A stretch of 64,000 nt of DNA from Pelomyxa schiedti (Eukaryota; Protista; Evosea): positions 1 through 64,000 of the forward strand of contig JAHLWZ010000836.1 of NCBI GenBank assembly GCA_020536535.1, in the 5' to 3' direction. Both the position numbers and the translations under genes were made by a program. This document shows, piece by piece, positions 726 through 60,525 of this stretch (position 1 is the first letter of the stretch; every line of letters begins with the position of its first letter). The notes beneath the pieces are model-generated. The model made no database searches. It saw only the letters and a program-made list of their open reading frames with translations, and was not told the origin of the DNA.

Positions 726-2804
726 ATGGTGTGTTGTGGAGGAGTGCTTATTGCTCTGGGCCTTGCTTCGTTGGGTTTCTTTGTCCAGGCCTTGTTCTGT
801 GTTGGGGTGTGTATTTTTTGGGGGGCAATCGGCAAGTGAAACTTTTTACTTTTGTAACTGGGGTTGTAACAACCAGAGTTTCGCAATGCAGTTGCTTGAC
901 TATGCCAACAAATGGCGACTTGTTCGCCAAGCTGCCAAGAAGCAGGCCAACTTCGTTCAAATTCAGAGGGCTCTCCTGCAGTCAATCCTGCAAAGAAGCT
1001 GCGCAAACGGGGGTTGCGATTTCGCACGCAAGCACAGGATCATGATGGCAAACGATGGTGTGTGCACGATGGAGCAATTCAGAGCCAGAATTCCGCTGTG
1101 CACTTATTCGGACATTGCTGCGGATGTTGACAAGGTGGCACAGACTGGCTGCAAGTCCTCTTTGTGCTCGGATCCTGTTATTTTTCTTACTGCTACAACT
1201 GGTTAGTACTATTTTTACTAGTATTAATTTTGTAAGTAGCGGGGGGAACTTCTAATTGTTGCCTCTATTGTATAACTGCATGTTTGTAATTCTCAAGGAA
1301 CAACTGGGCCTCAGAGACTGGTTCCAGTAACCAAGATTGACATTGACAAGGTGAGGACCTCATCTTATCGGGCAGTCTACAACCCCAGGTCCCTGGGTTT
1401 GTTCCTGGCTATCAACACCCAGCAGGGGGTGAAAAAGAGCCCTGGAGGAATCACTCAGGGTGCAGTGGGTCCAATAACTATTTCAAGGATGAGACACTGG
1501 CTTCCATTTGTGTCAGCATCACCTTTTGCAGTCTATCAAGTATTTACTTCCAGCCCAATCTGTTGACGTTGATTTACTTAGTTTGAAAGGCAGCGGAGTG
1601 GGTGGAACCGGCAATGTACCTTCACTCCTTGTGGGCATTGAGAAGCTCCAACAAGGTTGTTTGTCTGACAATTCCATTTGCCGGAATGCTTCACTCCTTC
1701 TTTTCAGTCATGATTCGAGACTGGGACAACCTCATTTTTGACGTGGAACACGGCACTCTGCACCGCGAAGTTCCACCTCCTCAACTCAGTCACGCACCAA
1801 TGCCCTCTCACGCTTCAGTATTAAGCGCTTACGGATCGAAAGTCCCACCAGGGATGCCCGGCTGGGTTCACACTGTGTTCCCAAGGCTCAAATTGGTTGT
1901 GGCCAATGTTCCAAATCCAGCTCTGAGATATGTCAGTGAATTGGAGAAATGGTTTGGAGATGGAATACAGTTCAGACCGCTCATGTACGGAGCATCAGAA
2001 TGTGTCATGGCACTTCCTCCTCCAAGCAGCACCTTCAAAGAAAACAAATTCCGGCTTCTTGCTGACGCTGCTTTTTTTGAATTCCTGCCCGTGGATGAAG
2101 AAGAAGCCAAACGATGCGCGGGGACTGGTGGAGCCATTTTGCCACAGGAGGGTGTTGTTGGGCACATTTACGAAATGGTTCTGACAAACTTCTCTGGGTT
2201 GTGGAGATACCGCATTGGAGATGCCATTCAGTTGGTTGGATTTGAAGGTCAATGCCCAGAGGTTAGTTTCCACCCTTTTTCTTATCCATGTGTTCATCTT
2301 GTGTTGCAACAGATAAAATTTGCGTATAGAGTCGGATCCGTTCTGAGCATCTTCGGCGAGAACATCAATGAGATTCACCTTCGCAAAATAATGGCCACTG
2401 TGTTTGGATCCAACGTTGTGGACTTCACATTCTTCCAAGATGATACTGCGAGCCGGTACCATGCTTATGTTGAACTGAACTCTCCTCTTGACACTGAGGC
2501 AGTACGCACCTTCTCACGACCGTCGTATCACAACTGACCACCTTCAACAAATAAAAAGGTGAGCGGACTGAGTGACAAGATGGACCAGGCCATCAGACAA
2601 ACAGTTTACAACTGCAGACTCTACCCAATCAAGAAGCCCTTTGTGATGATTGTGAAGCCCGGCACCTTCGCAGCACTGACATCCCACATTCAAAGGACCA
2701 CTCTGAGCCAAGCAAAAGTACCCCCGAGACTCACGAACCCCACCCACATCAATCTCCTCAATGACAATGTCACCCAACAGTGCCTCGACTCAAAAACGAA
2801 CTAA
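726..2804 (+). CDS. GH3-family acyl acid-amido synthetase, paralog 1 (multi-exon, hydrophobic N-terminus)
   Basis: Spliced product has IPLCTYSD, TATTG|TTG motif I, YGASE, FFEFLP, TNFSGLWRYRIGD, FAYRVGSVLSIFGENINE; GT-AG introns join the ORF pieces; N-terminus MVCCG matches paralogs 2 and 3. Confidence 0.85.
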
Positions 2805-2894: not shown

Positions 2895-4448
2895 CTACGT
2901 GCCCGGTGCTTTCTTTGAAGAATGGCTAGCGGTTGACTTTGTTGTTGCCTTTGTGAACGCACCCAAGCTGCGTTGGAAGAGCAATCCGAGCTTCTGATTT
3001 GCCTCTTCGCTTCCTGCATACGCGGCCCTCTTGTAAAGTGAGAATGCCATTTCCAAGTCCATCGGGGCTTGTTGAGCCTTCTCAATACACTTTCCAACCA
3101 GCACTAAGGAACTCACGGCGCCGATTTCAATGACTTGCTGATAGAGAGAGTTGGCTTTGCTAATGTCCGCATCCACACTCCACCCGTTTTCATAGCACAT
3201 GGCCAGCATGACTCTCGCTTCACAGGACGGCGTTTCTGCAACAGCCTGAAGAATAGAATTGATACTGTTGAAGCCACGAGAAGCCCCCATCATCTCAGCG
3301 GTACCAAGCATAAGGATTGCGCCAAGATTGCCCATATCAAAGGCCCTTTTAAAGAGTGACATCCCCAAGCTCTTATCAACAGGAACTCCCACTCCATGGA
3401 GGTAGTAAGTACCAAGTTCGAAAATGGCTTCACTATATCCGGCATCTGCTCCACTCTTCAGGAGGGAGAAGGCCTTCTTGTAGTCCACGCCAACTCCCTC
3501 GCCGCTATAGTAATGCTGAGCAAGTTTGAACATTGCAGGTACGAATCCCTCGTTCACAGCTCTCTCTAAAAGTGAAGCAGCTTTAGCCGAGTCTTTGGGA
3601 ACGCCATCACCGGCATCATAGTGTTCAGCCAGGTTGCTCATTGCCATGGCACAGCCGCCTTCAACTGACCGCTGGTAAAGCTCGATTGCCTTTGTGAGAT
3701 CTTTCTCGACTCCACGTCCCGTGTCATAGCAGTTGCCCAGGAGCCACAAGGCCTGAGGTTCGCCTGCCTCAACAGCCTTTTGTATGAGTGCAACAGCTTT
3801 TGCGGTGTCCCGGGGTACTCCATCTCCACTCATGTAGAGGTAACTGAGATTCTGCTCAGCACGCCATACAACCTCTGGATCATTTGTAGCAGCTGCTGCT
3901 CTCTGGAATAGAGGAACCGCCTTACTTGTATCTCGTGGAACGCCTGATCCACCGAGAAAGATATATCCAAGATTGAGACATGCATCCATCCTTCCAAGAT
4001 CAGCCGCTTTCTGTAGAATGGGAATAGCACTGCCTGGGTTCCTAGCAACGCCAGAACCCGTGATATAACATGTACCAAGGGTATACAGTGCTTCCGCATC
4101 TCCAGCATCTGAAGCTCTTTGCAGGTAAAGAATCGCTCGCGCAGGATCCTTCTCAACGCCGGTGCCCGTCATATAGCAGCTGGACAGGCTCACCATCGCC
4201 TTCACACTGCCGGCGTCAACTGCCTTGTTTAAGTACTGGATGGCCTTGATGGGATCTGGATCTGTGCCCTGTCCCCTCCTGTAGAACTCGGAGACCGCGA
4301 ACAGCTGATCGGGATCTCCCAGCCTATCGGCCATGGTCTTAACCAGCTCAAATCCCCTGGGTTCGTTACGCCCGACTTCCATGCAGAACTGCAAGGTCAT
4401 AGATCCGCCATTAGCCCTAGCCTGTGCAAAGAGATCTGCGAAATTCAT
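2895..4448 (-). CDS. Sel1-like repeat protein, paralog 1
   Basis: Long ORF of tandem ~36-aa repeats (A..LG..Y..G.GV..D...A...Y..AA..G); ATG at 4448 aligns with paralog at 58.9-60.5 kb; a small upstream exon is possible. Confidence 0.9.
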   Translation of the reverse strand: MNFADLFAQARANGGSMTLQFCMEVGRNEPRGFELVKTMADRLGDPDQLFAVSEFYRRGQGTDPDPIKAIQYLNKAVDAGSVKAMVSLSSCYMTGTGVEKDPARAILYLQRASDAGDAEALYTLGTCYITGSGVARNPGSAIPILQKAADLGRMDACLNLGYIFLGGSGVPRDTSKAVPLFQRAAAATNDPEVVWRAEQNLSYLYMSGDGVPRDTAKAVALIQKAVEAGEPQALWLLGNCYDTGRGVEKDLTKAIELYQRSVEGGCAMAMSNLAEHYDAGDGVPKDSAKAASLLERAVNEGFVPAMFKLAQHYYSGEGVGVDYKKAFSLLKSGADAGYSEAIFELGTYYLHGVGVPVDKSLGMSLFKRAFDMGNLGAILMLGTAEMMGASRGFNSINSILQAVAETPSCEARVMLAMCYENGWSVDADISKANSLYQQVIEIGAVSSLVLVGKCIEKAQQAPMDLEMAFSLYKRAAYAGSEEANQKLGLLFQRSLGAFTKATTKSTASHSSKKAPGT

Positions 4449-5082
4449 CTTCACTAGCAAACACGTTATACATACAAAATACATGTACATATACCCACAG
4501 GTGTGTTACGTCGATTCCGCTGCAATGTATCCTTGCCCTTGTTGTATGTTTTTGTGGTTTTTTTCCCGCTTCTCTGCGGCGTCACTACACTTTTGCCCTG
4601 TTTCCCTGCCTGATTGCCAATCGATCCTTTTCAAATCTGAAAAGTTCCATAAAAAAAAAATTTGGACATTTCCACCCAAACACCATTAGGCAAAAGAAGA
4701 AACTTCCTATTTTTTTTGGACTCATAACAAGAGCACTAAAATCCGTGGAAACATTCGAACATAACCAGTACGAAGCTGATTAAGGGAAGAGTGCAGAACA
4801 TAACCGTGTCTCCGAAGTGCACCTCAGCGCCGCACCCTAGAGTCTTAACACCACAACTGATGAGAACTTGTAAGCAGAGTGAAACAACAGAGAACAACTT
4901 ATCTTGATTCTCGACTCGAACCTCCACTGAACTCCGCACTCTCAGGCACAGACAACAGAGCCTATTATTAAAATTGTAGAGAGATATTAGAACAGAATTA
5001 TAGGGAGAGATGTAATGTAAATACCTTTGCTTGCTGCGAACTGAACTTGCTGGCTGCTGAAAATGCTCCGCTCTCTGCCCTC

Positions 5083-20961: not shown

Positions 20962-21199
20962 CGAAAAATTTCCAACCAATTTTGATTGTGAGCTTGTTCT
21001 TCGAATGGAAGGCGGGAGAGTCACCCAATTGTGCAAGCCAAAATGGTTTGCTGGCAACACTCACTGAAATTGCGCGCTGCACCTTCCTTGATTCCCAAGT
21101 CAGGCACTAGGGACCAGAAGGAGCAGCGTGCCCATAATCCTGACTTCCCAGAAGGGGTAGATAAGCGAACAGCCGGAGAAAAATAAAAATCACCGGCGC

Positions 21200-21321
21200 A
21201 GGGCCAGGCGCATAACGTTTTTGTCATTCGCCTTTTACTAATGAGCAACCGTGCTCCTGGTCGTCAACTAATGCGCTTTGATCACGTATTTTTGTGATTG
21301 GGAGGGGCTTGTACTCTCCCT
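21200..21321 (+). ncRNA. U5: U5 spliceosomal snRNA
   Basis: Invariant 11-nt loop 1 CGCCTTTTACT (21229-21239) closed by TCATT/AATGA; CGCATAA and CCG around internal loop 2; CCAGG/CCTGG stem; Sm site ATTTTTG (21288-21294); 3' stem-loop GGGAGGG/CTCTCCC. Ends are approximate. Confidence 0.9.
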
Positions 21322-25408: not shown

Positions 25409-27135
25409 GTGACATGTGACACTAGTTCGCGGACAAATGCCTTTATAGACCACTACGCACAGATCTTAACGAGAGGTATTTTTTGTTGGCGTTTCAGGCC
25501 TGCAAAGTCAGGAGATAGTAGAGTTCCGCATGTCGATACTGGAAGTACGTACAATCTTTATTCTGTATTACTTTACACTACAGTGTTTTTCACTACTGTA
25601 GTTTATGCCGCATCATCTTGGTCTGTGGACCGTGCCGTGCCTTTTCGAGATTGAGAGCAAGGGCGATACCGCGTTACCGCAAACCGAAATTCGAAGACGG
25701 GTAATTGCGGCTTTGTCAGCTATCTGTGCTCGACACCCCTTTTTACGGGCTCGGTTTGGGCCACCCAGTGACAGGTTTGTTTTGTTGCTATTTGATGCTT
25801 TTGAGATTATTTATGCGGACCAAGATATCTTAAGATTCCACCTTCGATTTCAGATTACGAACTCCCTGTGTCTTTCGGTGATTTAGGCTCTTCCTCAGAA
25901 GCCCAACAATTACTACTGGCTCACGCAAAGTAGCCTTGTGTTGTTGCCTATGAAGTTACTCACAAAAATCCGAAGTGAGGATTTGGGGCAAAGGACTTGG
26001 AAGTGTATAGTCAGTACCTGCAAGGATTCCAAGGCTATTTTCTTGAATTTCCTTTTTTCTCACAGCATCATCGTGCGCTGTTATTTCTTAATCCCCTTTT
26101 AATTTTATTTTATCAAGGATGGTGTATCACTTGCCCATTTGTGCAGAGACATTTTACAAGCACTGAATGGGGAAACTCTTACCCCACTCCCCATTCCTCA
26201 ACCTCATGAATGCAGACACGCCGGTGTGACTCAGCAGATAGAAGAGAAATATATAGGACACTGATTTCCATTTGAGGTTCATCATTCTTGGAGCCTGAAA
26301 ATTGGGATGCCTTTGACACAAAATATCTGCCCATTATCGAACGCAATCGTACACTCGTGAAAACCACTACATCAGCCTTCAAATTCTCAGTTGCTGAAAC
26401 GACAGCAGTTGTGAAGGTATGTTGCCTGACTCGTGTTTTTGTAATCCTTTCTCCCAGGCCTGCAAGTTGAATTCTACCACTGTTCCTTGCCTTTTTATGG
26501 CAGCTGAAACCCTCGCACTGGGATGCCCACTCACAGTAACTGGATGTATCCCAGTCAACCTACGTTCACCTGATGACATGGGGCTTTCGTTTACCGTGTC
26601 ACATATCATGATACCACCCTTCCGACCAGCTATCCCAACCTCATCCACTGCAGAGGCGCAAACCGCCTGTTTATGGGAACTCTCACGTCAGTGGCACACC
26701 GCGATGACACTAGCACATCAAGCACAATCTGTACCAGGTGGCCGAATCCATCAGCACTCAAGTGAGATATTTTTGGGTCGTGACTACACGCCAATGGTTG
26801 ACCTGAACCCCAAATCTCTGAACGTAATGGTAATAGACCACTCAATCAATAACAAGTCAGTTCCTTCTAACAACACTTCTGCTCAGATTTCTAGCATGGG
26901 AGATGCAGGCACAAAGTTCGGGATTGACGAAGCCGGAGCCAGTCCAAGGAGCCTCTTCCGTGTCTCCAGTTTACTCAACACTGGTGGGAAGAACTTCGTA
27001 CCACGCGATCCTATCATGTACTGTGGGACACTCTCAGGCTCCTTACAGTTTAGTATCGTGGTCTTCACACACCTTCAGGAAATTGCAGATACCTTGGCCC
27101 AATCCATTAAGAGGCTTGCAATTTCTGCCATTTAA
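25409..27135 (+). CDS. CoA-dependent acyltransferase (condensation/PapA5/alcohol acetyltransferase superfamily); 5' end uncertain
   Basis: ALSAICARHPFLRARF; splicing the GT-AG intron near 26.07-26.12 kb gives FLFSHSII|DGVSLAHLCRDIL (HxxxDG catalytic motif); C-terminal SSMGD and CGTLSGSLQFS. Confidence 0.7.
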
Positions 27136-27385
27136 TATGTTTGTATTCAAAAATCTCTAAAATTAGCTATTTTTTTATGTTTTTTTATGTCCATGCACCA
27201 GTGCCAACGAAGTGAGAACAGACCAGAACTGATCGAAAACCGTCTCACAAAAAATTTCTTTGAGCCGGTGGTCGCGCTACAGTGCATCAATGTTTTTTGA
27301 GGAGACTTCGAAGAAAATTGTTGTGCCGGTCCCTCGAGGCGCCCCGCCCCCGGGATACCCAGGAAACGGAGCACCAATTTCGAGG

Positions 27386-27466
27386 TAAAGTTAACAGCTT
27401 TATGCAATAACCATTATGCGATACCCCCTGGGGTTTCGGGGGCAGCAGGAATCGAACCTGCAACAT
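27386..27466 (-). tRNA. trnN-GTT: Circularly permuted tRNA-Asn(GTT): 3' half (27437-27466) precedes 5' half (27386-27428), 8-nt linker
   Basis: Minus strand reads ATGTT GCAGG TTCGATT CCTGC TGCCCCC G - AAACCCCA - GGGGGTA TC GCAT AATGGTTA TTGC A TAAAG CTGTTAA CTTTA; reordered, it is a 73-nt cloverleaf with G73 and A15-U48. Confidence 0.85.
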
Positions 27467-27690
27467 GAATTTGAGGGTGGACGACACAAGCAGCACCGTA
27501 GCTTGTTTTTATTTTTATTGTAGCATCGGCAAAATTGACCCGGCAAACAGGCATCATCAACAAATTTTTTTTTGGTGAGTGCGCATTGTGGGAGGATCTT
27601 GAAAAGCGGTTGGAAAGTTCGATCCATTTCTCCTTGAACTTTGCTTTCGCCAAACGAGTTTGATTTTAAAAAAAAAAACAAAGTCGGAAG

Positions 27691-28319
27691 ATGCAACGCC
27701 TTGTAGTTTTTGTTGCGTTTGTGGTTGTTGTCGTTCATGCAGCACTTCCAGATTGTCCAGTTCACCTCTCTGCCAGTACGATCTTTTCCTTTTCGCTCAA
27801 AACTCTTACCATCTAAAACCGTCAGCACTTACAAACCAATTGTCGGAGCAACTGAGTATTTCAGGCTATACCTTGACTGACGGAAAATGGGAGTCCGCCC
27901 CTGCAACTGTAAAAACTCCTTACATCTTCTATAAACTTGTGTTTTACCAAATCAACACAATACAGACTGTGTCTCCTTACTCTGACACAACTTGGGCAGC
28001 AACTGACCTTTGTGTTGGCGTTGAAGGGAGGTAATCTGCTATATGACTCTGAAATTCTATCATCGAATGTGCTAATTTTTTTGCATGTAGTGTGACTTAC
28101 AAAATCGGAACCACTGGCTACTCAATGTATCGCCCATTCCGTAATATCTTTGTTTCTCAAAATTAACGACGGTGCAGCGTATGCAAGTTTGACTTACCAG
28201 AAATTGGGTACAACACATGCAGTGTCTTGATAAACCCAGTAGGGTCAAATTACACAGCCACATACAGCGGTTGTGATAGCTATAAGGCAAACATTCTCTT
28301 TGTCCTGAGTGACTACTAG
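27691..28319 (+). CDS. Small secreted hypothetical protein (4 exons)
   Basis: Signal peptide MQRLVVFVAFVVVVVHA; GT-AG introns join the exons in frame; several Cys; no family recognised. Confidence 0.55.
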
Positions 28320-37802: not shown

Positions 37803-39948
37803 TCAACCACTTACATGAATGACGTTGTCATTGAGGAGTTTGATGTGGGCAACGTTTTTGACCCTCGGTGGAATTTTTGCTTGGCTCAGAGTGGACATTT
37901 GAATGTGGGATGTCAGCGATGCGAAGGTGCCGGGCTTCACAATCATCACCAAGGGCTTCTTGATTGGGTAAAGTCTGTAGTTGTAAACTGTTTGTCTGAT
38001 GGCCTGGTCCATTTTCTCACTCAGCCCACTCACCTTTTTTTATTCATTTGAAAGTTAGTGAATGAGAACAGAGCCTCACGTTGTGGGAGAATTCAAGAAT
38101 TTGAGTACTTACTGTTTCCGTGTCAAGAGGAGAGTGCAGTTCCACATAAGCATGATACCTACTTACAGTATCGTCTTGGAAGAATGTGAAGTCTACAACG
38201 TTGGATCCAAACACAGTGGCCATTATTTTGCGAAGGTGAATCTCATTGATGTTCTCACCGAAGATGCTCAAAACGGAGCCCACTCTATACGCAAATTTTA
38301 TCTGCAAACTCAAAGAGTGAGCGAAGAATTGACAGTTGCAGGAATGGAGAAGAAAAAAGGAGTGAGAACGAACCTCTGGGCATTGACCCTCAAATCCAAC
38401 CAACTGAATGGCATCCCCAATTCGGTATCTCCACAACCCAGAGAAGTTTGTCAGAACCACTTCGTAAATGTGTCCAACAACACCCTCTTGTGGCAAAATG
38501 GCTCCACCAGTCCCCGCACATCGTTTGGCTTCTTCTTCATCCACAGGCATGAATTCAAAAAAAGCAGCATCAGCAAGAAGCCGGAATTTGTTTTCTTTGA
38601 AGGTGCTGCTTGGAGGAGGAAGTGCCATGATACATTCCGATGCTCCGTACATGAGTTCTCTGAACTGTATCCCATCTCCAAACCATCTCTCCAATTCACT
38701 GACATATCCCAGTGCTGGATTCGGAACATTGGACACAATCAAGTTGAGCCGTGGGAAAGCGTTCTGAACCCAACCAGGCATCCCTGGTGGAACTCTCGAT
38801 GCGGAGGCCCTCAACGCGGAAGCGTGAGAAGGCATTGGTGCGTGACTGAGTTGAGGAGGTGGAACTTCGCGGTGCAGAGTTCCGTGTTCCACGTCAAAGA
38901 CGAGGCTGTCCCAGTCTCGAATCATGACTGAAAAGAAGGAGTGAAGCATTCCGGCAAACGGAATTGTCAGACAAACGACGTCGCGGTAACTTCTCAAAGC
39001 CCACAAGGAGTGAAGGTACATTGCCGGTTCCACCCATTCTGCTGCCTAAAAGAAACCTCTGTCAAAGTCAATCGAATGGTTTGGAAATAAATACTTGATA
39101 GACTGCAAAAGGTGATGCTGACAGAAAAGGGATCAAGTTCTTCACTCTGAGGACTATAATGGGGCCCACTGCACCCTGAGTGATTCCTCCAGGGCTCTTT
39201 TTCACCCCCTGCTGAGTATTGATATTCATGTACAACCCCATGGACTTAGGGTTGTTACTGGCCATATAAGCGCCAGTCATACACTTGTCAACGTCAATCT
39301 TGGTTACTGGAACCAATCTCTGAGGCCCAGTTGTCCCTTTGACAAAAAAAAAAAAAAACCCAAGCATCAGTACGCCAGAAACGTAAGCATGCGGCCACTT
39401 CCCCTCGTCTCACTAATTTGAATGTGTGGTGCTAATACAAAACAGTTACCGGTTGTTGCAGTCAGCAAAGAAATAGGATCCGAGCACAAAGAGGACTTGC
39501 AGCCAGTCTGTGCCACTTTGTCAACATCCGCAGCAATGTCCGAATAAGTGCACAGTGGAATTCTGGCTCTGAATTGCTCCATCGTGCGCACACCATCGTT
39601 TGCCATCATGATTCTGTGCTTGCGGGCGAAATCGCAACCCCCGTTCGCGCAGCTTCTTCGCAGGATTGACTGCAGAAGATCCCTCTGAACTTGAACGAAG
39701 TTGGCCTGGTTCTTGACAATTTGGTGAGCAAGGCGCCGTCTGTTGGCGCGATCAACCAACTGCATGGCGATGACCTGGAAATTACAATGGCGGAGAGTCA
39801 TCCAATGCGAAAAGTTGAAACCCAAAAAGAATGGGGAAGAAAGGAAACCACTCACCCCAACGCGGAACAGAGCATTCACAACGCTTTGCCTGAAGATGAA
39901 GACCAACGAAACAACACCAAGAGCAGTCAGCACTCCACAACACACCAT
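37803..39948 (-). CDS. GH3-family amido synthetase, paralog 2
   Basis: Same exon structure and motifs as paralog 1 (YGASE, TNFSGLWRYRIGD, FGENINE). Confidence 0.85.
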
Positions 39949-40003
39949 CCGGCTTTTCCAGAATTTAGTTGTTTTTACACTGAAAACTCGACGCGATCTG
40001 GCT

Positions 40004-40070
40004 GGAATAAAATAATCAACAGACCGGAACGCTGTACTTTTCGTTTGGATCGGCGGTCTGGGGTTTTTTC
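40004..40070. repeat. Dispersed ~78-bp element, diverged copy
   Basis: GAATAAAATAATCAA-CAGACCGGAACGCTGT...GGATCGGCGGTCTGG-TTTTTT matches the copies at 42312 and 60893. Confidence 0.75.
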
Positions 40071-40205
40071 AGCCATCTTTTGATTGAACCGTTGTTGAAA
40101 GTGAGGAATCTCCGGCCTCGCGGAACTACATTCAGAAGAAAATCACTTTCGAGAAGGCTACTTTAAGTATGTTTCCCGAACAGCAGTGATTGTGTTGTGG
40201 TGCAG

Positions 40206-42302
40206 TCAACCACTTACATGAATGACGTTGTCATTGAGGAGTTTGATGTGGGCAGCGTTTTTGACCCTCGGCGGAATTTTTGCTTGACTCAGAGTGGACA
40301 TTTGAATGTGGGATGCCAGTGACGCAAACGTGCCGGGCTTCACAATCATCACCAAGGGCTTCTTGATTGGGTAAAGTCTGCAGTTGTAAACGGTTTGTCT
40401 GATGGCCTGGTCCATTTTCTCACTCAGTCCACTCGCCTTGTTTTGTTTGTTGTGGAACGTTATCATTGGATGAATTGGAAGTTCAGTTGCTTACTGCTTC
40501 AGTGTCAAGAGGAGAGTTCAGTTCAACATAAGCATGATACCGGCTCGCAGTATCATCTTGGAAGAATGTGAAGTCTACAACGTTGGAACCAAACACAGTG
40601 GCCATTATTTTGCGAAGGTGAATCTCATTGATGTTCTCACCGAAGATGCTCAAAACGGAGCCCACTCTATACGCAAATTTTATCTGCAAACCCAAAGAGT
40701 GAGCGAGGAATTGACAGTTGCAGGAAAAAAAAAAGGATGAAGGATGAATGGAGAAGAAAAAAGGAGTGAGAACGAACCTCTGGGCATTGACCCTCAAATC
40801 CAACCAACTGAATGGCATCCCCAATGCGGTATCTCCACAACCCAGAGAAATTTGTCAAAACCACTTCGTAAATGTGTCCAACAGCACCCTCTTGTGGCAA
40901 AATGGCTCCACCAGTCCCCGCACATCGTTTGGCTTCTTCTTCATCCACAGGCATGAATTCAAAAAAAGCAGCATCAGCAAGAAGCCGGAATTTGTTTTCT
41001 TTGAAGGTGCTGCTTGGAGGAGGAAGTGCCATGATACATTCCGATGCTCCGTACATGAGTTCTCTGAACTGTATCCCATCTCCAAACCATCTCTCCAATT
41101 CACTGACATATCCCAGTGCTGGATTCGGAACATTGGACACAATCAAGTTGAGCCGTGGGAAAGCGTTCTGAACCCAACCAGGCATCCCTGGTGGAACTCT
41201 CGAGGCGGAGGCCTCAACGCGGAAGCGTGAGAGGGAATTGGTGCGTGACTGAGTTGAGGAGGTGGAACTTCGCGGTGCAGAGTTCCGTGTTCCACGTCAA
41301 AGATGAGGCTGTCCCAGTCTCGAATCATGACTGAAAAGAAGGAGTGAAGCATTCCGGCAAATGGAATTGAAAGACAAACGACGTCGCGGTAACTTCTCAA
41401 AGCCCACAAGGAGTGAAGGTACATTGCCGGTTCCACCCATTCTGCTGCCTTAAATACGACTCTGTCAAAGTCAATCGAATGGTTTGGAAATAAATACTTG
41501 ATAGACTGCAAAAGGTGATGCTGACACAAATGGAAGCCTGTGTCTTCTCTTGAAAACAGTTATTGGGCCCACTGCACCCTGAGTGATTCCTCCAGGGCTC
41601 TTTTTCACCCCCTGCTGGGTGTTGACAGTCAAGCACAGCCCCATGGACTTAGAGTTATAGATTGACACATACGTTGCAGTGATCCACTTGTCGATGTCAA
41701 TCTTGGTTACTGGAACCAATCTCTGAAGCCCAGTTGTTCCTTGATAAGAACATAAGTAAGACAGCAATATAAATGCGTGTCGGCCTTCCAGCAACACCCA
41801 CCGGTTGTTGCAGTCAGCAAAGAAACAGGATCCGAGCACAAAGAGGACTTGCAGCCAGTCTGTGCCACTTTGTCAACATCCGCAGCAATGTCCGAATAAG
41901 TGCACAGTGGAATTCTGGCTCTGAATTGCTCCATCGTGCGCACACCATCGTTTGCCATCATGATTCTGTGCTTGCGGGCGAAATCGCAACCCCCGTTCGC
42001 GCAGCTTCTTCGCAGGATTGACTGCAGAAGATCCCTCTGAACTTGAACGAAGTTGGCCTGGTTCTTGACAATTTGGTGAGCAAGGCGCCGTCTGTTGGCA
42101 CGGTCCAGCGACTGTATGGCGAATACCTGACAAGACAAAAAAAATAAGCAGTGACAGTTACCAAGGCGAATAAACCGCGAAAAGAAAGTACCAGAAGAAA
42201 CCACTCACCCCAACGCGGAACAGAGCCACGCACAACGCTTTGTCTGAAGATGAAGCACAACAAAACAACACCAAGAGCAGTCAGCACTCCACAACACACC
42301 AT
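40206..42302 (-). CDS. GH3-family amido synthetase, paralog 3 (1-bp deletion near 41212: pseudogene or assembly error)
   Basis: Tandem duplicate of paralog 2 including intron sequence; plus-strand GGCCCTC (38806-38812) is GGCCTC here, shifting the frame. Confidence 0.75.
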
Positions 42303-42630: not shown

Positions 42631-44885
42631 ATGGCAACGGATGCCCGTTTGTGCCCCATCTGCGGGCGAGCGTTTTTCCACACCGGAGGGTGCCAGCCCT
42701 TGGCCTGGCCCGCCTGCGGCCACCACGCGTGCACGTGCTGCGCCGTGGCGATGGCCCACACAGCCCTCCTTGCCTCCCTCCCGCGTCCCCCACCGCGTCT
42801 CGTCTCTGCGGCCGCCGCGACGCCCACTATCCCTTCTGCGTCGGCCTCTGCTTCTGTTTCCTTTGTCATTCATTGCCCGCAGTGCAATGGAGGTGCGAAG
42901 CTCACCGTTGACGACATTTCGTCATCAAGGTAATGGGAGATTAGTAATTATGGGTGGGGGTCAGACTGTTGCCGCACTATCTCTATCTCATTAAGCAGTT
43001 AGCACAAAATTAACTCTTAGGTAGGTGCGTCGAAGAGGCTGTTGTGGCGGTGCTGAAAACAGATAGCAGTCTTTTACAGGAGAGCGAGGCCTTGAGGGCG
43101 CCACAGCTCGAAGCGGAATCGCCCCTGTGTGCCGCAGAGTGCGGAAAGAAGGCCACATTCTTATGCGTTCAGTGCAACAATGCGCCGCTGTGCGAGGAGT
43201 GCTTCCCGGGATTGCACAAGTTCCAGTTCCAGAAGGGCCACACCAAGAAGAGCATCGGTGAGATGGCGGCGATAAGAGACGCGGAGAGGGTCCTCAACAC
43301 ATCCAATTGCAGGGAGCACTTTCAGCCGCTCACCATTTTCTGCACACAATGCGATACTCTGAGCTGTGTTGTGTGTGGGCAGTTTGGGAAGCACAGAGAT
43401 CACTCTGCCAAGTGCGTGCCTGTGGTCGAAATGAAGGAGAAGTTGATGGCGAAGTTGACCACAGTTTTGGATCAGTGTACAGCTTTGCAAAAGCGGATGA
43501 ATGCTTCGGAGCAAGAAATAAGCCTTAAGTGCACAACTCTCGCTCAGAATTCTGGAGAAGTGGAGAAGTGTATCAACGCGTTTTTCGATTCATTGTTGGA
43601 GGACATTCAAAGAAGGAGGAATCAGCTACTCACACAGCTGAATCTTCTGCACTCCATCTCCTCAGAAAACCTAGAGATTCAGAGGCTCTCAACAAAAACT
43701 GCCAGGGAGTTCCTCCAGGCCCTGGCCCAGCAGAAACCACAAGCAGGGGAAACCTCTCCGAAAAATTCTTCGCCCCCTTCACCCGGTAGTGCACTTCCAA
43801 CCAGTGCTGATGCCGTTGTTGTTCTTCAAACCGAGGAACGAATCCAAGTTCTTCAGAACATCCTGAAAAGGCTCTCAGCCGAGAGCCTTGACCTCTCCCC
43901 GTGTTGTTCGCCAGTGTGGAAGTGGGAAGTGGATGACAGTTTGCTTAAGTCCCTCCAGAATATGTGCATCACAACAAATATTCCAGTGAGCAAAGGTACT
44001 ACAGTTCAAACTGTTGTGACCCAAAGTACCCCTGCGTTTTCAATCACGTTCACAACACTCAATGGGCACAACCAGGTTCCACCAACTACAGTTGACTACA
44101 CTTCTCCATATCAGAAGAGTGTCATACTGTCGGGTGGGATTCAAAAGTGGGTCGTTCCATCAAGTGGAAAGTACAAGATCACCGCCGTTGGTCCGAGTGG
44201 TGGAAATAGTGCCTACTTTCATACTACGGGGGGCCTTGGTGCTGCCGCTGTATCAGTGGTGGAACTGAACGAGGGGACTATCGTCAACATTCTGGTTGGG
44301 CAAGAAGGCGAGGGAGACAAGAGCACAGGGGGAGGAGGGGGAGGTACGTTCATTTGGGAGGCGAACGGAGACGAGGGGCCCCTCGTTTGTGCCGGAGGTG
44401 GTGGTGGTGCAGTACAGACGGCAGGCAAGGATGCCAGTGTGACACCAGACGGGACACACGGGAATGGGCTGACATCTGGGGGTGGCGTGAATGGCGGCGG
44501 TGGAACACCAAGCGACCCTCGCCAGCGGGCAGGGGGAGGAGCTGGCTGGCTATCCGATGGCTGCCAAGGGGAAGGGTACACCATCAAAGCCGGGGGTGGT
44601 GTGTCCCCACTGCGAGGTGGTGGGGGTGGCACCTTCGGGGGGACCCAAGAGCGTGTTGGCAGCGGTGGGTTCGGCGGCGGTGGTGGAGGGCAGGGCCAGG
44701 GGGTAGCCCTTGGGGGCGGTGGGGGTGGCGGATACAGCGGCGGGGGGCCCGGGGCTCCCAATGGTTCACTGTTCCTGGGTGGGGGCGGTGGGGGTTCCTT
44801 CTGCAGTACCAAATGTCAGCAGACACACATGACAGTGTCCCAATCCAGAGGAAATGGCTCCGTCACCATCGAGAACCTAGCCTGA
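42631..44885 (+). CDS. TRIM-like RING-Bbox1-Bbox2-coiled coil protein with ALK/LTK-type glycine-rich domain
   Basis: RING CPIC...CGHHACTCC...CPQC; B-boxes CAAEC..CVQC..CEEC..H and CREH..CTQC..CVVC..H; coiled coil; GIQKWVVPSSGKYKITAVG.SGG..GG.GA..ILVGQ.G..GGGGGTF..AGGGGG; one intron (42930-43024). Confidence 0.85.
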
Positions 44886-57174: not shown

Positions 57175-58812
57175 TCAAGGGCTCCCTTTGGAGGTGTAGG
57201 ACAAACACCACTCAATGGAGGCGGACATCGGCGGTGTTTTGACACGTGACAGCACTTGCCTGACGTCATCCCGTTTCAGTCCACAGTCTAAAACCAGCCA
57301 TTTGACCACCTCAATCCTATCGCTCTGACAGGTTTCCAGGAGCAGCTGGTTGCCCTTTACTCTGAGGTCGGCATAGACCAGTCCACCACATGAAACCAGC
57401 CACTTTGCTGTTTCAAGTTGCCCATTGCTGCAGGCCTGGGCCAGCGCCTCACAGTGGTTATATCTGGCAAGTTCTGCTGGTGTCTGTCCTATCTTACTGG
57501 CAACCCATTTAGCGGTCTCTATGTCCGCTCTGGCGCAGGATACAACAAAGGAACCTGGCGCGATTGGCATACCACGTGATGTGAGCCACTCTGCAATGTC
57601 CAGGTGCTTCCTTTCACAGCAAAGTTCTAGGGTGTTGGTTCCGATGCAGTGGGTAAACTGGAATTCCCGCTTCGCTGAGGAGAGACCGTAACCTGACAGG
57701 GATTGCCGCATTGGTAGGTCCCACATGTCAACGACCCACTTTAAGAGGTCCAACCTGCCAAACGCACATAGTCCAGGCAGGAGTATATCTACAGCGTAGT
57801 CTTGTCCAACACGAGCGAAAGTTGCACTAAGCCATTCTGCTATATCCCGATGCCCAAGAAGACAGCTCTGGGCAAAACAAGAGTTGATCCTATTTGGCCC
57901 CAGTACAGTTATGGAATATGTTGTGGCGAGCCACTTGACAAGTTTCAAGTTTCCGGATTTGCAGGCGCACTGCAGCGCATCACATTCAAAACAGCAGGCC
58001 TGCTGGCTCGTGAGCGAGAACCTAGTTGCAAGCCACTCTACAAGTTCCATTTTGCCTGTTCCACACGCAAGCCTGAAAGCATAGCACAGCCTATCACAAA
58101 AGTGTTTTGCAGCCAGCCCAAAGGTAGCATCCAGCCACTGTATAGCACCCATATGGCCCCCCATGCAAGCCAACTGCAGTGCCATTGTGACTCCATCTCC
58201 ACTCACAGAACACACCCCAGGCCTGTCCAAGAAACTCTCGTCAATATCATCGGAATCACTTGCGGTGGTAGTAGTATTAGCAGGCGCGGTGGCGGGGTCC
58301 GGTTTCACCATCATGGGACGAGCGAACGTGGACAGCCACCAGCGGGCTCCGGCGACGGAGCCTCGGCTGCAGCACAGCGCGACGGCGCGGGACGTGGGCT
58401 CGCGGCCTATGGCGGGGCACAGGTAGCCCAGCGACTGCAGCGCGGCGTGGAAGGCGGACACGGAGGCGACGTCGCGGAGCAGCAGGGCGCGGGGGCGCCA
58501 TGGCGGCGGCAGGGGGCTGCTGCTGCTCCCGGGGACGGGGCTCGGGGGGTCGCCGCCGCTGCTGCAGTAGCGGAACGCGATCCAGTGCGAGCAGCGGAAG
58601 CACTCGAGGGACGCGCACTCGGCCACGGCGCACAGGGGGCTCCGGCGGCACTGCTCGTCCACAAGGCGCCGCGAGCCCAGAGCCACGAGCGGGAAAAAGG
58701 CCTCGGCCGCGACCACGCAGTCGCGGGAGGACAACAACCGCCATACGTGGCTCCAAACGATGTGGGATAAACGTACAACATTATCACCAACTCCTGTCTT
58801 TTCGGTCGACAT
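57175..58812 (-). CDS. Ankyrin-repeat-like protein, intronless
   Basis: Repeated AC..G.LE..KWL...F units (LACMGGHMGAIQWL, LACGTGKMELVEWL, CACKSGNLKLVKWL, QACSNGQLETAKWL). Confidence 0.8.
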   Translation of the reverse strand: MSTEKTGVGDNVVRLSHIVWSHVWRLLSSRDCVVAAEAFFPLVALGSRRLVDEQCRRSPLCAVAECASLECFRCSHWIAFRYCSSGGDPPSPVPGSSSSPLPPPWRPRALLLRDVASVSAFHAALQSLGYLCPAIGREPTSRAVALCCSRGSVAGARWWLSTFARPMMVKPDPATAPANTTTTASDSDDIDESFLDRPGVCSVSGDGVTMALQLACMGGHMGAIQWLDATFGLAAKHFCDRLCYAFRLACGTGKMELVEWLATRFSLTSQQACCFECDALQCACKSGNLKLVKWLATTYSITVLGPNRINSCFAQSCLLGHRDIAEWLSATFARVGQDYAVDILLPGLCAFGRLDLLKWVVDMWDLPMRQSLSGYGLSSAKREFQFTHCIGTNTLELCCERKHLDIAEWLTSRGMPIAPGSFVVSCARADIETAKWVASKIGQTPAELARYNHCEALAQACSNGQLETAKWLVSCGGLVYADLRVKGNQLLLETCQSDRIEVVKWLVLDCGLKRDDVRQVLSRVKTPPMSASIEWCLSYTSKGSP

Positions 58813-58913: not shown

Positions 58914-60525
58914 TTACCTGCCATGCTTTTTCTTTGAGGAATGGCTTGCGGTAGGTGTTTTTGTCGTTGCTTTTGTGAACGCACTCAAGTTCTGTTGCAA
59001 CAGCAAAGCGAGCTTCTGCATTGACTCCCTGTGTCCTGCGTCAGCGGCCCTCCGGTAAAGCGAGAATGCCATATCCAAGTCTATGAGCCCTTGTGCGCCA
59101 AACTCTAGGGACGATGCAACCCTGAATATGGAGACCACATGACCCCTTCCAATGACTTCCTGATAAAGAGAGTTGGCTTTGCTGATGTCTGCAGACACAC
59201 CCAGACCATTTTCATAGCACAACGCCAGCAGGACCCTTGCCTCACATGAGGATGTTTCTGCTGCAGCCTTCATAATAGGCTCGGAACCATTGTAGCCGCG
59301 AGCACACCCCATCAAGACACTGCATCCATATGTAAGAATTGCTTGAGTATTGCCCTTCTCGTAGGCACTTCGGATGAGCGAAACGGTGAAGTTCATATCA
59401 ACGGGTACACCTGTTCCTCGGCAGTAGCATGTACCAAGCTCGAACATGGCGTCACTATTTCCGGCATCAACTGCCCTCTTCAGGAGGGGAATTGCTTTAT
59501 TGTAGTCCACAGCAACCCCTTTGCCATCTATGTAATACTGAGCAAGTTTGCACATTGAAGGCGCATGTCCTTTCATTACAGCTCTCTCCGCAAGTGAAAC
59601 AGCTTTAGCTGGGTCTTTGGGAACGCCATCACCACTCATATAGGCATCGGCCAGGCTATTCATGGCAGCCGCGTAGCCACCGTCAACCGATCGCTGGAAA
59701 AGCTCAATTGCCTTCGTGATATCTCTCTCGGTCCCACTTCCAGTTGAAAGTAAGCTGCCCATGAGATATAAGGCCTTCGGGTCGCCGGCTTCAACGCCCT
59801 TTTGAATAAGTGCGAGACCTTTGGCGATGTCCTCAGGTACTCCTTTCCCAATTATATAGAGGTGACCGAGATTCAGCTCAGCACGCCATACAACTTCTGG
59901 CTCATTTGTACCAGCAGCTTTCTGGAATAGAGAAATAGCCGTATTAGTATCAAGTGGAACGCCATGGCCATGGAGATAAAGACATCCAAGATTAAGATAC
60001 GCCCCTGGCCATCCAAGATCAGCTGCTCTCTGTAGAAAACGAACCCCAGTGTCTAGATTTTTCACAACGCCACAACCCGTCATATAGCAGTCCCCAAGGG
60101 TGAAGAGTGCTTCTGCATGTCCGGCATCTGAAGCCCTCTGAAGGTAAGGAATCGCTAGCGGGGGATCTTTCTTGACACACTCCCCAAACAAATAGCAGTT
60201 GGCCAGCTTGAGCATTGCCTTCACACTGCCGGCGTCTATTGCCTTGTTGTAGTACTGAATGGCCTTGATGGGATCTGGATCTGTGCCCTGGCCCCTCCTG
60301 TAGTATTCCGCAACAGTAAGCAGCATCTCGTGATCGCCAGACCCATCAGCCAAATCCGTGAATATAGCAAATCCCCTGGGTTCGTTATGTCCAGCGTTGA
60401 AACAGAAATCCAATTTCATCGTTCCACCCCTAGCTCTTTCTCGCCAAATATCGTCAAGATCCAGATCCATTTCACTAGGAAACAGGTAGGTTAAGCACGA
60501 GAAAGATGTGCGATACATACGCCAT
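58914..60525 (-). CDS. Sel1-like repeat protein, paralog 2
   Basis: Colinear with 2895-4448 (RGQGTDPDPIKAIQY, PEVVWRAE.NL, C-terminal TASHSSKK); 5-nt first exon ATGGC plus a 46-nt intron (60475-60520). Confidence 0.9.

Follow-up and report, generated by a model that had tools for sequence, protein, structure and literature searches.

The question raised by positions 1 to 64,000 (forward strand) of contig JAHLWZ010000836.1 of the Pelomyxa schiedti assembly GCA_020536535.1, a 64-kb stretch hereafter called the window, is whether a tRNA whose two halves stand in reversed order on the minus strand, in a gap of about 600 nt between two plus-strand genes, can be a functional gene. The reading that we consider moderately probable is that this archamoeba has a working nuclear tRNA-Asn(GUU) gene, circularly permuted and expressed, on whose transcript ribonuclease P (RNase P) can act while the junction between the halves is still open; the production of a mature, rejoined tRNA is inferred. 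This reading is supported by the intact halves, by an arrangement that is not due to chance and is present in real DNA, by strong expression, by a trailer shared with a paralogous locus, by a linker free of signals, and by the position of an upstream A/T-rich element.

Read directly on the minus strand, the 3' half (27466-27437, tRNA positions 44-73) comes first and is followed by the 8-nt intervening sequence AAACCCCA (27436-27429), which holds no T run, and then by the 5' half (27428-27386, positions 1-43). The 3' half is composed of the variable loop ATGTT, the T-arm GCAGG-TTCGATT-CCTGC with the B box, the acceptor 3' strand TGCCCCC and G73, and the 5' half of the acceptor 5' strand GGGGGTA, U8, the D-arm with the A box and G18G19, and the full anticodon arm TAAAG-CTGTTAA-CTTTA, with the anticodon GUU at 27395-27393. 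The first-pass annotation of this DNA had read both halves and the linker in the same way, element by element, and the sequence matches that reading exactly. When the halves are reordered, ARAGORN reports a 73-nt tRNA-Asn(gtt) over the full length of the construct, in agreement with the 73-nt Asn cloverleaf proposed earlier, and the identical call is obtained from the 81-nt cassette run as a circle. All the stems of the reordered cloverleaf are paired, the halves join with neither overlap nor gap, and the consensus nucleotides are in place, as a recheck of both halves by coordinate confirmed for G1, U8, A14, G18G19, U33, GUU, A43, A44, U54-A58 and G73; CCA is not encoded at the locus. With the 3' half preceding the 5' half on the same strand, and a short linker joining the acceptor ends, the gene is truly circularly permuted, with 43/44 as its only junction. 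The junction is unambiguous because C is both the first base of the trailer and the last base of the leader, so that a shift by one base would break the U27-A43 pair or alter position 44. It falls at the foot of the anticodon stem, the site of the long variable arm in class II tRNAs.

In genomic order, no tRNA is found by ARAGORN in the whole window, nor by Rfam at the gathering score, the sole match there being a U5 small nuclear RNA (snRNA). With Rfam relaxed to E values up to 10, a 22-bit partial tRNA match to the 5' half only was obtained, together with a match of 18.6 bits (gathering score 69) to YrlA, a bacterial Y RNA-like family, at 27404-27465 of the minus strand in the order T-arm, acceptor, D-arm; the YrlA match arises because the tRNA-like module of YrlA has the identical order of elements, a case in which such covariance models can flag permuted tRNAs. 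A dedicated scan for permuted tRNAs, in which a T-arm with the acceptor 3' strand had to be followed within a linker of up to 120 nt by a matching acceptor 5' strand, and every junction was tried with ARAGORN, gave one match in the window and no match in the 141 kb scanned outside it (seven P. schiedti loci of the same assembly, reached through paralogous proteins); 640 kb of the shuffled window gave one permissive match. The permutation of the tRNA-Asn is not a product of chance. The seven other loci hold no tRNA, normal or permuted, and their G+C content of 45-47% is close to the 46.8% of the window. A scan of metagenomes for relatives returned a single chance match, within a coding region, and a scan of prokaryotic genomes for the joined 43/44 sequence returned none.

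Several more conventional interpretations of the same letters were tried and rejected. A hidden gene of normal order with a long intron is not found by ARAGORN with introns allowed, and the trailer carries neither a T-arm nor an acceptor 3' strand. The alternative ARAGORN calls that draw on the leader, for example a tRNA-Ser(gct), are artefacts of permissive variable-arm rules, in which the anticodon stem is rich in G.U pairs and the "arm" is unpaired. A remnant of tandem genes does not fit the two break points at one and the same tRNA position, or the 8-nt spacer devoid of a terminator. A tRNA-derived short interspersed element (SINE) or another dispersed repeat would not place the B box upstream of the A box, and the trailer blocks have no second copy in the window and none in the 141 kb of other loci. 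The near-direct repeat CCTC(G)AAATT noticed before in leader and trailer is present in both copies, as is the flanking AGCACC, seen on the minus strand as two copies of GGTGCT. The CCTC(G)AAATT repeat can be read otherwise than as a target-site duplication because its trailer copy belongs to a module conserved in the paralogous locus; both of its copies are complementary to one CGAGGG segment of the trailer.

The arrangement was compared with contigs from four sequencing runs of one study, namely two DNA runs of 2021 from one sample (X1 and X2) and two single-cell RNA-Seq runs of 2023 (X3 and X4, labelled "protist metagenome"). The runs fit BioProject PRJNA672820, which comprises the P. schiedti genome (PMC8887013) and later single-cell transcriptomes (PMC10579272); the genome, obtained from seven single cells, amounts to 52.4 Mb and has mostly GT-AG introns (PMC8887013). 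A Logan contig of X1 spans the whole 1101-nt stretch around the locus with no difference, and a contig of X2 covers 27089-28000 with the arrangement unchanged. These separately assembled contigs agree at a depth of 25-40, with the limit that X1 and X2 may be the source of the assembly itself and hence not independent of it. RNA contigs, which come from other cells, continue directly from the 5' half to the trailer.

The RNA seen is a 174-nt molecule made up of the 5' half and a 131-nt trailer (27428-27255, minus strand), which the X3 and X4 contigs cover at a depth of 135-1800, against 3-37 for the neighbouring mRNAs. Within this range the X3 contigs reach a depth of 440-1320 over 27264-27412, and a 212-nt contig of X4, with a depth of 135, has the Smart-seq template-switch oligonucleotide sequence ...GTACATGG attached at 27428 and a run of 17 A following 27255. 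The minus-strand sense of the RNA follows from this template-switch sequence at one end and the A tail at the other. Its 5' end is G1, to within one base because of the G run, and its 3' end falls in the AAA just ahead of a T6 run at 27254-27249, likely the RNA polymerase III terminator; a T8 run stands at the equivalent place of the paralogous locus. The terminator had previously been sought in the TTTT at 27314-27317, and that assignment is not upheld: the RNA contigs are continuous across it. In the probable source libraries all transcripts were polyadenylated in vitro by poly(A) polymerase before oligo-dT priming (PMC10579272), so that the capture of RNAs other than mRNA is to be expected and the A tail is not evidence of natural polyadenylation. 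Separately, a template-switch oligonucleotide is joined in X3 at 27412 of the minus strand, in the D-loop at G18/G19 and behind eight G, and none of the X3 contigs listed reaches beyond that base; a stop or jump of the reverse transcriptase at a modified D-loop base, a real cut in the D-loop, or extra untemplated bases may be the cause.

A second locus of the same kind was recognised in an 8487-nt contig of X2 that matches 27367-27412 with five differences. Upstream of the match, CCCC closes an acceptor 3' strand, and after ten further bases a different tRNA begins with GGGGACG-TA-GCAA..., so that the paralog has the same permuted layout as the tRNA-Asn locus with a similar anticodon-arm region but another tRNA. 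It is also transcribed, since an X4 RNA contig (102 nt, depth 145) begins at the paralog's own G1. Its trailer keeps the proximal motif CCTCGAAATTGGTG at about 90%, then a hairpin of unrelated sequence that nevertheless folds well (-14.9 kcal/mol, z -2.9), and ends with the distal 30-nt block and, some ten bases on, the T8 run. This repetition of proximal motif, hairpin, distal block and T run shows the trailer to be a conserved structured module rather than random downstream DNA.

At the tRNA-Asn locus the corresponding trailer begins, one unpaired C after A43, with a 52-nt G+C-rich hairpin (27384-27333); with that C it makes up the element P2 (27385-27333), which includes the proximal motif at 27385-27372, and the segment 27385-27332 folded alone gives -37.1 kcal/mol. 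The distal block of 30 nt (27293-27264), found through the match to the X2 contig of the paralog, is unique in the window. In a fold with the cloverleaf fixed, the leader, whose extent is put at 27502-27467, can pair over 27502-27479 with the trailer. This constrained fold prefers the long trailer hairpin together with 23 bp of leader:trailer pairing farther out, in which helix P1b, of 13 bp with one bulge, would join leader 27492-27479 to trailer 27332-27319 and stack directly under the hairpin, and helix P1a, of 10 bp, would join leader 27502-27493 to trailer 27285-27276; the last twelve bases of the leader (27478-27467) stay single-stranded before A44. The leader and trailer pairs proposed earlier, CACC/GGTG and AAATTC/GAAATT, are not the best ones in the constrained fold. 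In this fold the tRNA body interrupts a single long helix, at the site of the class II variable arm. As to other kinds of RNA processing, Rfam at E values up to 10 over 27250-27600 returned no ribozyme or other family in the leader or trailer. A hammerhead in the trailer was rejected, its UUGAUGC missing two invariant core bases, as were an Ire1-type site, whose loops do not fit CNGNNGN, and intron-type ends, which are neither GU..AG nor those of group I or group II.

The A/T-rich tract that had been pointed out upstream is present at 27519-27506 of the minus strand and contains, at 27516-27506, the 11-mer AAAAATAAAAA. In the window this 11-mer occurs in two copies only (0.14 expected; none of 100 shuffles reaches two), both in the sense orientation just upstream of small-RNA genes: 39 nt before the tRNA 3' half and, at 21179-21189, 5 nt before the U5 spliceosomal RNA gene (21194-21320, plus strand, Rfam 56 bits). 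A promoter role of the element is suggested by this placement. As a general small-RNA promoter it was rejected, being found before U5 and tRNA-Asn and not before U2; the U2 spliceosomal RNA gene on another P. schiedti contig (locus L002, 13497-13711, minus strand, Rfam 140 bits) has no A/T element within 90 nt upstream. The position of the element upstream of the 3' half, and not of the 5' half, fits one transcript of both halves, and a start as close to it as in U5 would, we suggest, put the beginning of the leader about where the leader:trailer pairing begins. The signals known from permuted tRNA genes of the type described by Soma et al. are found here as the upstream A/T element, the downstream T6 and the linker without signals, with the T run 132 nt past the 5' half and not a few nt from it. 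Elsewhere in the comparison loci, the same A-rich motif was seen with a short G+C-rich segment and a T run directly behind it: at L004 264-330 and 1473-1545 (plus strand) as a unit of about 50 nt that occurs twice, 1.2 kb apart, and ends in T5, and at L002 2801-2745 (minus strand) as a 30-nt hairpin with T13 after it. They may represent small polymerase III units or no more than intergenic signals.

The pathway that would unite these elements begins with transcription from a start downstream of the A/T-rich element. A single precursor would be formed of the leader, the 3' half, the linker, the 5' half and the 131-nt structured trailer up to T6, its downstream part corresponding to the RNA observed and its upstream part presumed. 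In this precursor the T-arm and the 7-bp acceptor stem would fold across the linker into the "top half" that is recognised by RNase P and the tRNA 3' endonuclease tRNase Z. The 5' end observed at G1 would be the product of a cut, presumably by RNase P, after which the 5'-half-plus-trailer RNA would accumulate; because this RNA does accumulate, removal of the linker can precede the closure of 43/44. The pieces could be held by the acceptor stem, by tertiary contacts and possibly by the leader:trailer helix until cuts at C|A44 and A43|C and ligation would yield the 73-nt tRNA, to which CCA would be added. Because the junction has no canonical bulge-helix-bulge (BHB), the cutting would need a relaxed splicing endonuclease or another nuclease. 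A farther-reaching version of the pathway, which can only be offered tentatively, is that maturation proceeds with neither a BHB nor a circle as the first product: RNase P and tRNase Z would open the acceptor loop to leave a two-piece complex, whose parts would be held by the acceptor stem and the leader:trailer helix beside the conserved trailer hairpin, and 43/44 would be closed afterwards by a nuclease and ligase pair of unspecified specificity or, in the extreme, never.

Several observations weigh against the reading of a working permuted gene. An attempt by hand to draw a canonical BHB at 43/44, with a 4-bp helix, 3-nt bulges and cleavage following the second base of the bulge, failed, as was already implied by the first-pass remark that the ends do not form a strict BHB. 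The sole geometry that obeys the rule pairs A38-C39-U40-U41 (ACUU) with the leader sequence AAAU, leaving one C.A mismatch; it lacks a leader:trailer helix on its flank and could form only by opening the anticodon stem. Placing the junction one base to either side broke the anticodon stem or failed the rule. A relaxed BHB-like motif may still exist there. The energy of the leader:trailer duplex is not significant, being equalled by 28 of 500 shuffled leaders and by 181 of 2000 genomic 39-mers, and the predicted helix is to be taken as a lead only. The X3 and X4 contigs contain no RNA over 27429-27860, which leaves the leader, the 3' half and the linker uncovered, and in the four runs, searched as contigs that can demonstrate presence and not absence, neither the joint of 27386 to 27466 (expected as ...AACTTTA joined to ATGTTGCAGG...) nor a circle was found. 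These absences of 3' half, joint and circle are weak evidence because rare forms are dropped from Logan contigs, Smart-seq2/Nextera libraries lose most products of about 70-76 nt, and modifications of the m1A58 type stop reverse transcriptase. The 5' end at G1 could, in principle, also be a transcription start. That the 3' half is transcribed together with the 5' half is supported indirectly: ends at G1 at two loci fit RNase P, which would need the acceptor/T-arm stack formed with the upstream 3' half.

The same data allow the locus to be an expressed but non-productive relic, transcribed and cut by RNase P, never rejoined, with ordinary genes supplying tRNA-Asn and the 174-nt RNA as a dead-end by-product. 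The RNA, showing only the 5' half and trailer with no joint or 3' half, and the lack of a recognisable BHB agree with it; the intact stems and conserved nucleotides, the great abundance of the RNA, and the different tRNA of like layout and trailer architecture that also yields RNA from its G1 speak against a relic, and we regard it as unlikely. If, on the other hand, the halves are never ligated after RNase P and tRNase Z have removed the linker, the mature tRNA would consist of leader, 3' half and CCA paired with the 5' half and trailer, and the leader:trailer helix and hairpin would project at the class II variable-arm site. For such a two-piece tRNA speak the discrete and very abundant 5'-half-plus-trailer RNA with its defined ends, the start of the hairpin one base past A43, at the variable-arm position, the conserved architecture of the paralog's trailer, the lack of a BHB to direct cutting, and the established precedent of permuted genes for transfer-messenger RNA (tmRNA), which give two-piece RNAs. 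However, the partner piece is absent from the RNA contigs, an appendage of about 170 nt on a decoding tRNA is without precedent, the leader:trailer pairing is statistically unsupported, and an accumulating intermediate accounts for the same data more simply, so that we hold this explanation to be quite improbable.

Equally improbable appears the reading that makes the 174-nt RNA the product in its own right, namely a non-coding RNA headed by a tRNA half that starts at or near G1, with the upstream 3' half as mere DNA context or nothing. Coverage that starts at 27428 with nothing upstream, the A box lying 8-19 nt past that base, the usual distance from a polymerase III start, and the conserved distal block of the trailer could all be accommodated by it. 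What it leaves unexplained is a perfect 3' half with G73 lying 8 nt upstream, here and in the paralog, and a canonical Asn anticodon arm; there is, besides, no B box downstream, the A/T element sits upstream of the 3' half, and no Rfam family is matched. Finally, an ordinary tRNA gene, or tandem copies of one, could have been turned into a chimera during assembly or whole-genome amplification, as the genome comes from amplified single cells, in which chimeras occur (PMC8887013), and the two DNA runs share one sample that possibly served the assembly. Against it stand the agreement of the separately assembled runs at the depth given above and the lack of any terminator or spacer of the tandem-gene type, and a chimera is for practical purposes excluded because RNA contigs of other cells join the 5' half directly to the trailer, both break points coincide exactly at 43/44, and a second locus has the same layout. 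The permuted, expressed tRNA-Asn gene is retained as the probable reading.

Other features of the window were noted in passing. The neighbouring gene contains a 57-nt GT..AG intron at 27909-27965 (plus strand), for which spliced RNA contigs exist in both RNA runs. Several fragments of genes of the GH3 family (acyl-acid amido synthetase-like) at 1587-2534 (plus strand) and 38047-41296 (minus strand) form an apparent small family cluster. There are two 530-aa open reading frames (ORFs) with Sel1 repeats (2895-4490 and 58914-60518), an ORF with a B-box zinc finger (43044-44885) and an ankyrin ORF (57175-58812); the best matches of one of the Sel1-repeat ORFs are only P. schiedti paralogs of 37-39% identity in GCA_020536535.1. 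An exact match to the protein of one ORF of the window was looked for and gave no record.

With respect to what has been described before, a review of 2014 counts 34 permuted tRNA genes in a red alga, four prasinophytes, one nucleomorph and one archaeon, and tabulates the junctions 15/16, 20/21, 37/38, 50/51 and 59/60, with BHB motifs (PMC3978253); a review of August 2026 names eukaryotic permuted tRNA genes from unicellular algae only. Neither names an amoebozoan case, and the 2014 table has no junction in the variable loop, which accords with the first-pass annotation; the junctions given there, 20/21, 37/38, 50/51 and 59/60, are in the table, which also has 15/16. The full-text literature on Pelomyxa or Amoebozoa with tRNA genes or disrupted tRNAs gave no report, a search of incomplete coverage that is not proof of novelty. 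The P. schiedti gene would be the first permuted tRNA gene outside algae and archaea. Since 2007 such genes have been known from few unicellular algae, one nucleomorph and one archaeon, and have been explained through the BHB and the splicing endonuclease; an expressed amoebozoan case breaks the tie to algal lineages on which current evolutionary arguments are based. Standard tRNA finders miss these genes entirely, so that the tRNA sets of protists may be under-annotated. P. schiedti also offers a system for testing directly the order of RNase P action and ligation and the need for a BHB, as cultures and suitable single-cell libraries of RNA polyadenylated in vitro exist (SRR23919866-SRR23919877, PMC10579272).

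Among the systems with which the locus can be compared, the permuted ssrA genes, for which Keiler and colleagues reportedly described in 2000 a two-piece tmRNA with unligated pieces, have the T-arm and acceptor 3' strand, an excised spacer, and then the acceptor 5' strand with a long RNA, the downstream 5' end being made there by RNase P; they differ from the Pelomyxa gene in being bacterial and in giving tmRNA instead of a decoding tRNA. The split tRNA genes said to have been found by Randau and colleagues in 2005 and by Fujishima and colleagues in 2009 in Nanoarchaeum equitans and Caldivirga carry extra complementary sequences on their halves, which bring these together before cutting and ligation and are comparable with the possible pairing of leader and trailer in Pelomyxa; however, those halves are separately transcribed genes joined at a BHB, whereas the Pelomyxa halves lie 8 nt apart on one strand. 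The permuted genes of Thermofilum pendens (Chan, Cozen & Lowe 2011, PMC3218864) share the very short linkers (1 and 7 nt) and differ in their archaeal host, the 59/60 junction, the BHB-type motifs and the encoded CCA. The same gene order is found in the prasinophytes Ostreococcus and Micromonas and in the Bigelowiella nucleomorph (Maruyama et al. 2010), and Ostreococcus tauri even has a permuted tRNA-Asn(GTT) (PMC3978253); nearly all of these genes are of the 37/38 type, their BHB going back to the canonical intron site, and they belong to another lineage and have no sequence relation to the Pelomyxa gene.

The closest likeness is to Cyanidioschyzon merolae (Soma et al. 2007, 2013; PMC3978253), where the 3' half also precedes the 5' half on one strand, the linker is short and devoid of promoter and terminator (7-74 nt, against 8 nt in Pelomyxa), an A/T-rich element stands upstream and a T run downstream, CCA is unencoded, and the usual eukaryotic consensus positions are kept. 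In contrast to this alga, the Pelomyxa host is a heterotrophic anaerobic amoebozoan, the junction is 43/44 instead of 20/21, 37/38, 50/51 or 59/60 and has no BHB, and a structured trailer of 131 nt takes the place of a T run near the 5' half. The order proposed for the algal genes is circularisation first, followed by the cuts of RNase P and tRNase Z (PMC3978253), whereas the Pelomyxa RNA suggests that the cut at G1 can precede junction closure. As part of the reading that we hold to be the probable one, what would be new in comparison with the known permuted tRNA genes is the lineage, the 43/44 junction, the ends that do not conform to a BHB, the long conserved trailer, and the accumulation of a 5' piece that is cut at G1 and not yet joined.

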